From Octopus bimaculoides (lineage: Eukaryota), in NCBI RefSeq assembly GCF_001194135.2, contig NC_069005.1, positions 29,336,834 to 29,400,833 on the forward strand: 64,000 bases of DNA. Direction: 5' to 3'. Positions 22,801 to 28,800 of the stretch are shown here, in pieces. Position 1 is the first letter of the stretch; each line of letters starts with the position of its first letter. The notes under the pieces are model-generated. The model saw nothing but the letters and a program-made list of their open reading frames with translations. It was not told the origin of the DNA and did not search any database. The translations under genes were made by a program, and so were the position numbers.

Positions 22801-25800
22801 ATACAAGCAACTGTTATTATAAAAACACCCTACAATATGTTCAGCCGTAATAATCTACATATTTTCTACACTGACATTGCAAAACTGTTTATATGCAAAA
22901 CTGACAAATGTGTTTCACTGACCCTCATTGTGATTGTTGTAAGTCATCAACTCTTACCACCCCACCATCTTTCAACCACTATGTTGAGTCCACAGACTGG
23001 GCATCCAAATATCTGGTGCGTTCCTTCATTGTTAAGGATTGATATACTCTGGAACAGCCCTATCCTCTTAGTATACAGTAGTTCATCAAAAACATTCTAT
23101 TACACCTAGACCAATCTTGCCTCCAAACTATAATACTCTTCTGGTACGATGGTGGAATTTCCTTGGACATAGATACAAAATAAAACTGGCAATTGAGAAA
23201 GATGCAGCACAGTCAAACCTAGCAAAGAGTAATAAAGGGAGGGGGGGGGCATTTTGACAAACCTATGGAAAACAATTTGACAGTAGTGTAAGGATTTGGA
23301 GTTTCATTTTGACCCATTAAAAGTAAAGGCCTGACTCACCAATTAAGTGTCTCATATAAATCTTAAGCTTTCTCTCTTAATATAACATCTTAATCTAATT
23401 TGACAAGTTGATTATTCTATTCAACTTTTATTTGATTTTTCTTTATTTCATCAAGGAAGTAATATACCTAAGAGGAGACAATTTTATTCATATAAGCTAA
23501 AAGATCATATCTATCTTGGCTTTCCTTTATAGAAATTAACATGCTCAATCCATCTCAGAATACTTAAATTATTGTCAATCACATTAAATGAAACCTTTCT
23601 CTCTCCTATTCACACACACCATACAGAACATTACTGAAAATTTACACAACCACTACAGCATAGGTAAAACCAGATATTTTCATTCACTTTTTTCTTTCCA
23701 GTTGACTTGAAATAACTTTGAATATGACAGACCTTAAAACATTGTTAGGATATTACTAAATTTTTTTCCGTAATAACTAAATAAAACATATCAGTATTCA
23801 CATAGCAGCCAAGAAACCTCCTTCAATGTTCAAGAGAAAAATAACTTACGATTTAAGAAAAAATTTTCAACAGAAGGAAAGAAAAAAAGAGAGAAAAGTT
23901 GTGTGTGTGTGTGTGTGTGTGTGTGTGTGTGTGTGTGTGTGTGTGTGTGTGCGCGCATGTATGTGTGTGTGTGTGTGTCCAAAAACCCATGTAAATAAGA
24001 ATTCACTGTGTGCTAGGTATACAATTCAAATGATAAATGAAATGTAGAGTTAGGATGGATATGGATATATATATATATATATATTATATTATATATATAA
24101 AGACCCTAAGACTACAATGATGGCAATCACTTTCTCAAGCTAGAAAACTAATTAAAGCAATTACAGAATATGTCAACTACTATTTATAGAATATCATTTA
24201 ATACAATGTTACCAAAATGAAATAACCTGGAATCATTAAATAAATTGCCTACATTTATGTCCACCCGTTCAAGTCCTATTGGCATTCATCATTAACATTT
24301 TAACTAAAACAAATCAGCAAGCCAAAAATGGCCAGCAGACTATTATGTACTCACTTCAATAACTGGACCCACTTCCCCCTCGCTTGGTGTTTGGTTCTGA
24401 AAAAATAAGAAGGTCCATCATAGGTTTAACGACGTTATCAGGCCTCGGCATAAGGTAAGACAGTTTTCCCCGTTGATAAATACGATTTAAATCAGTATTT
24501 TTCATTGGTTTTTCCTTTTATACCTTCTCATTTGCATTTTTTTGTTTGGTTTTTTTTTTCTTTTTTAATTTTATCTTAGTTTTTGAAAATTAACTGATCT
24601 ACAGTAATTTAATGTGAAAGCTTGATTCTATTCTTTACGAGTGAAAATGAAAATGGGATTGCAATTGCAACTTAAAAGTTTTGAAAAAGCAAGCAATAAA
24701 ACACAAAAAGGGGGAAATAATACACGAAAGGGGTCAGTGTTGAGTAAATACTAAGTTCTATTCCGGTTTAAAATATAAACTAAAGCTATCTACTTATCAC
24801 TGAATTAACTAACTAAATTTTTAAAAAATTATATTCAAAAATAGGAAATTTGATGTTACAAGAAGAATAGGTCTCTGACATTAAAATCTGAAATCATTAA
24901 TGTCAAATATCTTTATTCTTAAAATGAGCTAAAATGGTTTTTATTAATATTGAAAAAATTTTTTTTATTAATATTGAAATACTATATTTAAATCCAAAAC
25001 ATTAAACAAATGGTTGATCTTTAGACCAGGGAAAAACCTTATACTGTACAAATACTGGAATTGTAAATCTATCAAAATATAAAAGCTTTTTATAACCACA
25101 GATAATAAACACTATGGTAGAAGTAAATTGCTGACGAATAAAGTTTAATTAAAATTATTATTCCATAAAAACTGTAAAACATTGATATAAATAATTTCCC
25201 CAGGAAGATTTTTGGAAAATGATGCTAGTTTGATAGCAAAAATTATGTAACCATTGAATTAACAGAACTATTTTAACATGATAAGAGACCATCCAAAAAT
25301 GTTTCGATTGTCTTTAGTACACTTTAGCCTTACTTTTAGAAATTACAGCCCTTTAATCTACATTGAAATATGCATCAGCAACAATGTATTCTTTAATTTA
25401 AGCTGAAAAAGATCAGAACTGTAAACTTGGTTAACTCTTTCAGTGAAACTTTCCCAAATCAATATTTGTAGAGGGTTCTATTAAAGACATTGAGGGGTTT
25501 AACACAATGCTTTTTCATTTGATGGCATTTTACAAAAATAGCATTATTTTCAAAATCAAAATATGTATAGACAGCAACATTGTGGGAAATTGTATATTCA
25601 AAGGTATACACGATATACAAGACTCTGGAAGGTTGGTGAAATCCAGACCAAATCCCAAAAAGAGATTAATTTAGAATTTTCAATTCTAGCCTAAGTCCAC
25701 TATCAAAGAAATCAAATTCAAGTTTATGTTTCCCTAAGAAATGTAGATAAATAAGCAAATTGAATTTTCATAACTATAATTTTATTTTCTACTTCATCTC

Positions 25801-28800
25801 AAGTATTGCGGTGCATCTGAGCACTGCATGAAGAAGTTCATTTTCATTATTATTATTATTATCATCATTATTATTATTATTAAGCAGTTAGCATTTTAAC
25901 CAGCCATATCCAACCCAAATATTCTACCTTGTTCAAATGTTCAAAACTAACCAGATTCAGCCTTTCACACCTAACCTATAATGTCATTCTGAAAATAAAT
26001 AGCCACATAACTGAAATCTTGATGCTACGAGATGATTCAAGATTTAAATCAAACTAATGTCAACAAATAAACATTATATTTGACAGACTAATCTGAAGGC
26101 TAAAGGGTTAGGATAGAGGGGAAAAAAGTCACTATTCTTGTTAATAAAAATTACTTTTGCTTCATTTAGAAATAATTTGGTGATTACACTTTCAATTATT
26201 ATACAGATCTTAAATAGGAAAATTCTGAACACTTTTAGATCTCCTTTTCATTTAGAATTGAATTTATGCATTTGTATGGTATTAATCTTAGTGATTCTTA
26301 ACTGGGTGGCTAGTAACACCTAACTTACAGTAGGCAGTCTCTGAAAATTAAAATTATCTATGATACAAAATTTCTATCAGTACAGTCAACGAGGCTAAAC
26401 TCAAGATTTGTGATATAATTCTTTAACTTGCTTCAACTCTACAGCTGTGGTCATGCCGGGGCACCACTGTTGGAGAATTATAGAGAAACATTATACTGGA
26501 TCTAGCTTACTAAACATATTTCATATTTAGGCTAAAGAAAAAACTTTGAGGCATGTAAGGAAGTAAGTTTTTCACTTTCACTACAATTTTTCTGAAGTAC
26601 ATTAGAATATGGGAATCATTCTATTCAAAATTTAACAGAGACATAAAACCACATAGTAGATTCTAGAATTTAATATAACCTATCTCATTCTTGCATTAAT
26701 AAAGTGATTCTTCCTTATTGAGTGAAGCAGTGAAGATTTGAAATGCTATCCTCCCTTCAATTGCCTATGAGTGATTTATTTAATAGAAATACAAAAAAAC
26801 AAATAAATTAAAAATTAAGAACATTATAAATCAGTAAACAACTTCGATGCTTATGCATAAGTAGTTCAAATTTTCTAAGTCTGCTTTACATTTCAGAGCT
26901 CAAAACTAACTGAAGAGGATGAATTTGAGACTGATAAAATATCTGAATATTTAACATAGTAGTTGAAAGGTTTTAAAATCTTAACACTTGGTTTCATAAA
27001 GAACACAGAATTTGGTTTACGAAAAACTCATTATCAGAAACAACAAACTCCCATACAGCTTCTTTTATGAAACTGTATGGAATGATAATTTTTAAAGAGG
27101 AAAGATAGCATTTCATATTCAATTATTTTCCTTGCCCTCTGCCAACAATAGAAAACATTTAAACTTACTTCTATAATTTTGCTAAATGCTTTAACTACAA
27201 AATCATAAAAAGGGTAAATGTTTAAAAAGAATACATTCAATCTGACTATATACGTTTTCATTTATTCTTAACTAACCCCCATTAAAATATAACTGAGAAA
27301 TTTTTAAATAATTATTTGATTGTGAGATAGAAACATTACTTACAGACCAGAATTAAAGCAAAAAATAGAAATAGGTGACATTTTTTTTTTAAATATTAAG
27401 TAATATAATAAATTGGGGAAAATGCCAACCTCAATCAATATTTGCAAATGGCAAACCCTTACACTTAACCACAGGAATATTAAGGAAATGTATCCTAGTT
27501 ACATGTTATTAAACCAATAAGAAACCACATGATTTTATTTTTAAATACTAACTTTTAAGAATCTTTAAATATTTCTAAAATTTTAAAGTTTCAAGAAAAA
27601 ATGAATTTTAAAGGCTGGATAAAGTGGGACCTTATGATTTAAGTATATGGGTCTAAGTAAATCTGAAGGGATTTTTTTTAATGTAAAAGAGAGCAATTTA
27701 AGATTGTTATAACAAATAGTGCGTGAAAGAAAGCATGATCTTATTGGTACAACTTATTTTCAAAAACTGAAATCAAATTGAAGACTCAAATGTTTGAGAA
27801 TGATTAGCAAATAAACTTCTAAGAAATTATCTATCCTGAATAACTTCATAAATGTTGAGTAAAGAGAAAAAAAATCAGAAAATAGAATTTTTTTTTTTTT
27901 TTTTTTTTNNNNNNNNNNTAATGAACTAACATTATTCCTCAATTTAAGAAATTTACTGCCAGTAATACTAATTTCAATAATTCCTGATGATTCCCCTAAA
28001 ATATAGCCTAACTTATACTTTAAGACTTGTGTTCTTTGAAGATTTCTAATTAGTAAATAATTAACATTTTATCTTATTTTAATGGCTTGCCCTACATTTT
28101 TTAAAATTTTTATTCAAAGATATAGGCAATAACAAATAGTCAATTCAATGAAATAAAACTTACAGAGCTTTCTTTGCCTTCGTTCTTTAACTTAAAATTC
28201 AATATGAAAGAAAAACATTAGATAAACATTTTGAACATAACATTATGTCATGCTAAAAATATACATTTCGGATAGAAATGAACAAAATTTCAATGGCATA
28301 TTTTAAAAAAAAATATATAAAGGTAATATGAAATAGCAAATCTTAAATTGGCTTTTAAATATGAAAATTCATATTTGTATGAATTCATATGATCTTAGCA
28401 CTTTGATGTGCCAATATATTTAGTCTATTGCACGAAAACTAATTTTTTTAAAAATGATATCAGAGGATATATAGTGTGTATATGCATGGTTCCGGTATCT
28501 ATGTAGGTTTGCTTCAAGTGGATGAGAAAAATGAACGTACTAATTATTGGTATAAATGAATAATATATTACTGGCAAGCCAAAAATGCAAAGCACAAAAT
28601 CTTAATACTCATAACCAGAAATATGCTAGCCTAAGATAATTAATTGCTCCCTAGAATGGCTATTCATTTCATCTATAAACTAGTAAAACTGTCAAAACAA
28701 CCTATGGTATTATAACAATGTAGGAATTATTGTTCACACTGTGTGCATACATTGTAGCCATAGTTGAACGAAAAATTGTTTAGATTGAACTATCTCCATG

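Follow-up and report, generated by a model that had tools for sequence, protein, structure and literature searches.

The members of CHD subfamily II, namely CHD3, CHD4 and CHD5, are chromatin remodellers in which two PHD fingers (PHD1 and PHD2), two chromodomains and an SNF2 ATPase follow one another in a constant order. The pair of PHD fingers of human CHD4 engages two histone H3 tails on a single nucleosome, and PHD2, packed against the chromodomains, regulates the ATPase. Solved structures of human CHD4 and CHD5 (6Q3M, 6GUU and 6RYR) contain PHD2 and the tandem chromodomains within a single chain. The gene considered here lies on the minus strand of a 64,000-nucleotide stretch of Octopus bimaculoides DNA (NC_069005.1, positions 29,336,834 to 29,400,833; hereafter the window) and, judged from its sequence, is a Mi-2/CHD4-type remodeller with the same domain order, whose canonical isoform likewise runs from PHD2 straight into the CEPLKGKV segment that opens the chromodomain region. 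It differs from the canonical genes in that it can place an optional 14-residue insert, predicted to be disordered, exactly at this junction, and in that PHD2 is wholly absent from a related transcript. The insert is encoded by a 42-nt segment of the intron that separates the PHD2 exon from the first chromodomain-region exon, and this segment is very probably a real exon, spliced at the same boundaries in a related species.

Microexons are exons of 3-27 nt by the strict definition and of up to 51 nt by a looser limit, and those of the Srrm3/4 (eMIC) programme show neural-specific inclusion and an enhancer that contains UGC near the 3' splice site. An earlier, sequence-only reading of the window had proposed that four short segments lying within 4 kb of this intron form a microexon array, which would build a variable spacer between PHD2 and the first chromodomain. 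One member of that array, the 42-nt segment, holds as a real exon, being present in a related transcript and having outstanding splice scores, whereas the three others (candidates 1 to 3) occur at chance level and have no outside support.

The 42-nt exon and its counterpart in a related transcript

A search with an exon model of 1,182 residues assembled from the window retrieved P0121, a 2000-residue protein encoded by a 6.2-kb transcript contig (L001) of the sequencing run SRR24189500. P0121 is 89% identical to the window protein, the next best matches, from bivalves and gastropods, being about 75% identical, and its sequence points to a source that is probably a fairly close relative, another cephalopod. 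The L001 cDNA was aligned to the window one exon at a time, with 77-85% nucleotide identity; a search with a 374-residue, two-sequence profile found no further cephalopod-like transcripts. At the junction, P0121 reads, block after block, ...EGKWSCPHC, NVEKVHEKQ, NQTPKEGDVGPVIE and CEPLKGKV.... The NQTPKEGDVGPVIE block, at nucleotides 1270-1311 of L001, is the counterpart of the 42-nt segment: its ends match exactly the AG and the GT that bound the segment in the window, and it is spliced directly to the CEPLKGKV exon.

The two versions of this exon share 36 of 42 nucleotides and 12 of 14 residues, the identity by codon position being 14/14, 13/14 and 9/14. Over 527 aligned codons of the exons shared by the window and L001, fourfold-degenerate sites are 40% identical, that is, near saturation; since neutral intron sequence is unalignable at such a distance, the 42-mer has been kept as coding sequence in frame, and its pattern of substitutions indicates purifying selection on the coding sequence. 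As L001 has the exon while the canonical form of nearly all other animals is free of it, the 42-nt exon qualifies as an alternative cassette.

Position weight matrices (PWMs) were built from the gene's own 23 acceptors and 24 donors, located by mapping the related cDNA, and the sites of the four segments were ranked among all decoy AG (617) or GT (756) sites of the host intron (Table 1). The 42-nt segment is the only one of the four with outstanding splice scores, which beat most of the real sites of the gene, and it lies in a GC-rich island of the intron. A small RNA behind this island was considered and rejected, a search of the window against Rfam giving none at the gathering threshold; a weak match to the C/D-box snoRNA snoMe28S-Cm3227 at 25308-25384 (minus strand; 27 bits against a threshold of 43, E = 0.59), away from the 42-nt exon, is probably due to chance. 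Within the exon, a strong internal donor-like site is present at 24373 (minus strand; GAA/GTGGGT, PWM 8.6) and also in L001 (GAT/GTGGGT); if used, it would yield a putative 24-nt version of the exon, encoding NQTPSEGE.

L001 is one contig from a short-read assembly, represented by a single member sequence, and the 42-mer match might in principle stem from a mis-assembled or chimeric contig, or from retained intron fragments. Such an artefact is extremely improbable, given that L001 holds an uninterrupted 2000-residue open reading frame (ORF) with every CHD4 domain, that the 42-mer is bounded exactly at the splice sites of the window, that intron retention cannot produce substitutions of the coding type where neutral sites are saturated, and that abalone and spider RefSeq models independently show the same architecture. 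Besides, if the contig was built from k-mers of about 31 nt, as is assumed here, the path of L001 from PHD1 through a 27-nt exon to the 42-nt exon would be no assembly chimera, one k-mer being enough to tie these three exons together. Further downstream, L001 carries 12 extra nucleotides (GTAAGCGCAGAG, VSAE; nucleotides 1416-1427) after the homologue of exon 17494-17387 and thus uses a tandem downstream donor there; no second donor matching this extension was found in the window at 17387 (minus strand).

Proposed exchange of PHD2 for a linker

The PHD2 exon, which is constitutive in the canonical isoform, is missing from the related transcript that carries the 42-nt exon. More precisely, L001 joins PHD1 to a 27-nt exon, this one to the 42-nt exon, and the latter to the chromodomain exon, so that the linker from PHD1 to CEPLKGKV counts 23 residues, 9 from the 27-nt exon and 14 from the 42-nt exon. 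The PHD2 and CEPLKGKV exons of the window are both flanked by phase-0 introns, and since the PHD1, PHD2, short and chromodomain exons concerned are all of phase 0-0, any combination of them keeps the frame. Of the variable PHD2-chromodomain spacer proposed earlier, there remains a frame-preserving linker exon N-terminal to CEPLKGKV, but L001 uses this exon without PHD2.

Elsewhere among animals, the canonical 17-residue tail is found at the PHD2/CEPLKGKV junction in 167 of about 195 scored CHD3/4/5 sequences, which bears out the contiguity of PHD2 and the CxPLKGKV segment on which the sequence-only reading had relied. Nearly all of 450 CHD3/4/5 sequences have the canonical CPRC[ST]-C.PLKGKV junction, the exceptions being abalone and spiders, whose isoforms are public computational gene models (RefSeq). 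In the abalone Haliotis asinina, isoforms X6, X7, X9, X10, X12 and X13 read CPHC, PEIQEGDEVEGEVLSEREKRKQE and CEPLIGKV, without PHD2; the linker alone is thereby present in 6 of the 13 isoforms, PHD2 alone in 7, and both in none. As in the cephalopod gene, a short phase-0 exon lies in the same intron downstream of PHD2 and isoforms run from PHD1 through a linker to CEPL(I/K)GKV, the acidic abalone linker of 23 residues having the same total length as the cephalopod 9 + 14. The difference resides in the layout, the abalone linker being encoded by one 69-nt phase-0 exon placed 73 nt past PHD2, whereas the 42-nt exon of the window lies about 6 kb downstream.

In the spiders (Parasteatoda, Argiope, Trichonephila, Nephila, Araneus and Caerostris), a 57-nt phase-0 exon with the pattern EG[AS]V.KE....KKK.EDEIK is found in the same intron, and isoforms are of three kinds: PHD2 only, PHD2 plus linker (Argiope X2-X4 and X6; Parasteatoda X1, X2, X5 and X6) and linker only (Parasteatoda tepidariorum X7-X10; Argiope bruennichi X9). 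Here too, a phase-0 cassette exon separates the PHD2 exon from the chromodomain exon and forms part of isoforms that lack PHD2, but the linker is a K/E-rich peptide of 19 residues with no sequence similarity, and isoforms with both elements exist. Mutual exclusivity of PHD2 and linker exon therefore fits the Haliotis models and not the spider ones, L001 having the linker only. No PHD2-less linker isoform was present in the Pomacea, Physella, Patella, Lineus, Mya and Saccostrea models examined. The exchange of PHD2 for a linker is thus already contained in public abalone and spider gene models and, as far as searched, is not discussed in the papers; literature searches on CHD4/Mi-2 microexons, PHD2 skipping and cephalopod microexons returned no description of such an isoform.

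The position and the logic of the swap are shared across the three groups. We consider it likely that the intron of the window contains one genuine 42-nt exon taking part in a PHD2-for-linker swap, the three other segments being due to chance. As to the window species itself, the balance tips slightly towards PHD2 replacement being the main use of the 42-nt exon. Several observations weigh against the swap as depicted here. Only one related transcript contig is available, from a de Bruijn-graph assembly of a single sequencing run, and the window species could join the 42-nt exon to PHD2, as spiders do, or include it rarely. In addition, no counterpart of the 27-nt partner exon seen in L001 was found in the window by a peptide scan, an ungapped nucleotide scan or inspection of all AG-27 nt-GT segments: its best minus-strand match stays below 18/27, no match has splice sites, and the two flanking introns, when scanned with the PWMs, yielded no convincing candidate for it. 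The 27-nt exon may be lineage-specific, or may be hidden in one of the three intronic assembly gaps listed in Table 1. Finally, shuffle tests gave no significant similarity among the cephalopod, abalone and spider linker peptides (p = 0.17-0.8). Homology of the three peptides was rejected on this ground, and the spider case, belonging to a different phylum, may reflect convergence. That the 42-nt exon would be the cephalopod version of an old regulated switch of protostome Mi-2/CHD4, from PHD2 to an acidic linker of about 20 residues encoded in the next intron, common to molluscs and spiders, is put forward tentatively, as an idea somewhat more apt to be wrong than right.

The phase of the exons also allows another use, in which the 42-nt exon would mainly be inserted between PHD2 and CEPLKGKV, keeping the frame and lengthening the hinge by 14 disordered residues with no loss of PHD2. 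The spider isoforms of Argiope and Parasteatoda that combine PHD2 and the linker are precedents for such an extension, but the only related transcript lacks PHD2 and none of the 13 Haliotis isoforms combines PHD2 with the linker exon, making it unlikely.

The other short segments of the intron

The coordinates, AG/GT boundaries, lengths and open frames of the four segments, as well as the flanking exons, were all confirmed in the sequence, each segment being preceded by AG, followed by GT, divisible by 3 in length and stop-free on the minus strand (Table 1). The intron between the PHD2 and CEPLKGKV exons (12,953 nt, phase 0, 30% G+C) contains 49 AG...GTRAG segments of 9-60 nt, of which 21 are multiples of 3 in length, 12 of these being open as well. 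These 12 open in-frame segments amount to 0.93 per kb, to be compared with 16 segments (1.02 per kb) in the neighbouring PHD1-PHD2 intron, about 0.5 per kb on the antisense strands and in another intron, and 6.8 +/- 3.1 segments expected for the host intron from first-order Markov simulations. Four such segments within 4 kb is the chance expectation, which agrees with the caveat attached to the original proposal that some of its members may be noise. In AT-rich introns of this kind, frame-preserving AG...GTAAG segments occur about once per kb.

Table 1. Positions of the exons, short segments and gaps discussed, with splice-site ranks and base composition of the four segments
Feature	Sequence	Position	Strand	Length	Remarks	Acceptor rank	Donor rank	100-nt GC percentile
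PHD1 exon	window	46366-46509	minus		ends ...WSCPHC, phase 0; 82% nucleotide identity in L001 mapping; Pfam PHD			
PHD2 exon	window	30448-30630	minus	183 nt	phase 0-0; ends ...CPRCS; Pfam PHD			
Candidate 1	window	28164-28190	minus	27 nt	LKNEGKESS	296/617	27/756	15
Candidate 2	window	26511-26531	minus	21 nt	PKYEICL	37/617	166/756	45
Candidate 3	window	26329-26340	minus	12 nt	RLPT	77/617	14/756	66
42-nt segment (exon)	window	24355-24396	minus	42 nt	14 residues, phase 0-0	8/617	3/756	95
First chromodomain-region exon	window	17387-17494	minus		CEPLKGKV...; receives the splice from the PHD2 exon or from the 42-nt exon			
Assembly gap	window	27909-27918			intronic; adjoins an A-run of about 21 nt			
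Assembly gap	window	37002-37011			PHD1-PHD2 intron			
Assembly gap	window	44551-44560			PHD1-PHD2 intron			
Abalone linker exon	L002	15266-15334		69 nt	73 nt downstream of PHD2 exon, 1.2 kb upstream of CEPLIGKV exon			
Abalone PHD2-to-linker-exon region	L002	15016-15334						
Spider linker exon (Parasteatoda tepidariorum)	L003	14726-14782		57 nt				
Spider PHD2-to-linker-exon region (Parasteatoda tepidariorum)	L003	13616-14782						

Candidates 1, 2 and 3 are all absent from L001, the only related transcript, and none of them is similar to a linker exon found in other animals. The acceptor of candidate 1, a segment followed by GTAAGT, has a PWM score of -1.4, which does not set it apart from a random AG, and its peptide shows no similarity to any linker exon; candidate 2 has a weak donor (GTAAGC, PWM 2.7) and an exon G+C content of 19%; candidate 3 is unremarkable, since 6 of the 30 AG/GT pairs of the intron whose acceptor and donor both score better than the lower quartile of real sites preserve the frame. 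Splice scores, chance frequency and the lack of a transcript match thus speak against an alternative cassette at any of these three positions, and each of them is highly likely to be noise, that is, a chance AG...GT match. Against this verdict, absence from one transcript is no proof of non-use, and the 3' splice sites of genuine microexons can be atypical. A 131-residue query made of PHD2, the four candidate peptides and the next exon retrieved only short exon-fragment ORFs and no candidate peptide, a result that is uninformative, this search matching the lengths of query and target.

A full array, in which the four segments would be combined to tune the spacing, can draw on the AG/GT boundaries and the open, frame-preserving lengths of all four, and on candidate 1, which in length (27 nt) and in relative position equals a possible partner of the 42-nt exon. 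This scheme is very improbable in view of the chance-level frequency of such segments and of the weak or average splice sites, the intron-like composition and the absence from L001 of candidates 1 to 3. In the same line, candidate 1 was tried as the counterpart of the L001 27-nt exon and rejected, with 7/27 nucleotides identical as compared to 36/42 for the 42-nt exon.

The 42-nt exon resembles the Srrm3/4 (eMIC) neural microexons in being short, frame-preserving and conserved, and in encoding a surface or linker peptide of a regulatory protein. It differs from them in its length, which exceeds the strict limit of 27 nt and fits only the looser one of 51 nt, and in its surroundings: no UGC is present within 50 nt upstream of its acceptor, the nearest being at -54, no GCATG is found within 300 nt of it, and scans for Rbfox and Srrm4-type motifs were unremarkable.

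Repeats found within the window overlap none of the four segments; a SINE-like element (25888-26111) sits between candidate 3 and the 42-nt segment and overlaps neither. The gap at 27909-27918 lies 245 nt downstream, in the transcript sense, of the candidate 1 donor and about 1.4 kb upstream of candidate 2, and as it overlaps none of the four segments, the reading frame across it is irrelevant.

The gene and what the exchange would mean

The minus-strand gene occupies nearly the entire window, its exons, recognized from the ORFs, the Pfam domains and the solved relatives, being spread between about 55.3 kb and 1.6 kb. In the assembled exon model, Pfam recognizes PHD (two stretches), Chromo, SNF2-rel_dom, Helicase_C and DUF1087, and the N-terminal CHDNT exons were placed in the window via L001; tandem PHD fingers, tandem chromodomains, an SNF2 ATPase and CHD-II C-terminal domains are all present, as in CHD subfamily II. 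A homologue search with the exon model gave 2,505 homologues, molluscan CHD4 proteins being about 75% identical. The closest solved structures are those of human CHD4 (6RYR and 6Q3M) and CHD5 (6GUU); the window protein matches residues 443-675 of human CHD4 with E = 3e-88, and the first chromodomain-region exon aligns to the human CHD4 residues that follow PHD2 in 6RYR and 6Q3M.

Several features of the locus can be mentioned at this stage. The donor of the PHD1 exon, at 46366, is unusually weak (TGT/GTTTGT), a weakness that could leave its joining to one or another downstream acceptor open to regulation. The PHD2 of the window has C (FC[C]VCKDGG) at a position occupied by R in at least 90% of the aligned CHD3/4/5 proteins, and Q at a near-invariant P (NP[Q]L); these two substitutions may be a sign that constraint has relaxed on a domain which splicing can leave out. 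At the 5' end of the gene, a gap at 55300-55344 adjoins the coding exon 55291-55178 (minus strand), and the assembly may lack the 5' part of this N-terminal exon. An ORF at 58774-58610, absent from L001, could represent an alternative first exon or have no relation to the gene. Two SINE-like families of dispersed repeats are found in the introns, one at 50907-54448 and the other at 22501-22725, 25888-26111 and 47006-47227. In the PHD1-PHD2 intron, ORF remnants at about 38500-43500 (minus strand), which by eye seem mariner/Tc1-like, lie between two near-identical repeats at 39181-39491 and 42936-43427 (91-96% identity).

The peptide encoded by the 42-nt exon is acidic (net charge -3) and stands directly N-terminal to CEPLKGKV. 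In an AlphaFold2 model computed from a 30-sequence alignment, the insert (residues 62-72) has a pLDDT below 50 and the chromodomain strands are confident, so the 14-residue linker is predicted to be disordered. Inclusion of the 42-nt exon, most likely together with skipping of PHD2, would give a remodeller with one PHD finger on a flexible acidic spacer, in which the second reader of histone H3 is replaced by a short, acidic, disordered linker. By analogy with human CHD4, the protein would turn from a bivalent into a monovalent reader of H3 tails, and the compact PHD2-chromodomain module would be uncoupled, the contribution of PHD2 to the regulation of the chromodomain-ATPase being lost.

The 42-nt exon is a well-supported new, short, frame-preserving alternative exon at a junction where the searched literature describes none. 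With its position and those of the abalone and spider linker exons (Table 1), exon coordinates are now set in three genomes and, as regards genome annotation, one short exon, in all likelihood true, has been told apart from three plausible decoys. If the old molluscan and spider switch envisaged above holds true, it would yield a monovalent H3-tail reader with a freed chromodomain-ATPase module and, if conserved, the PHD2-less isoform with its flexible linker would represent a naturally occurring separation-of-function form of the NuRD remodeller.

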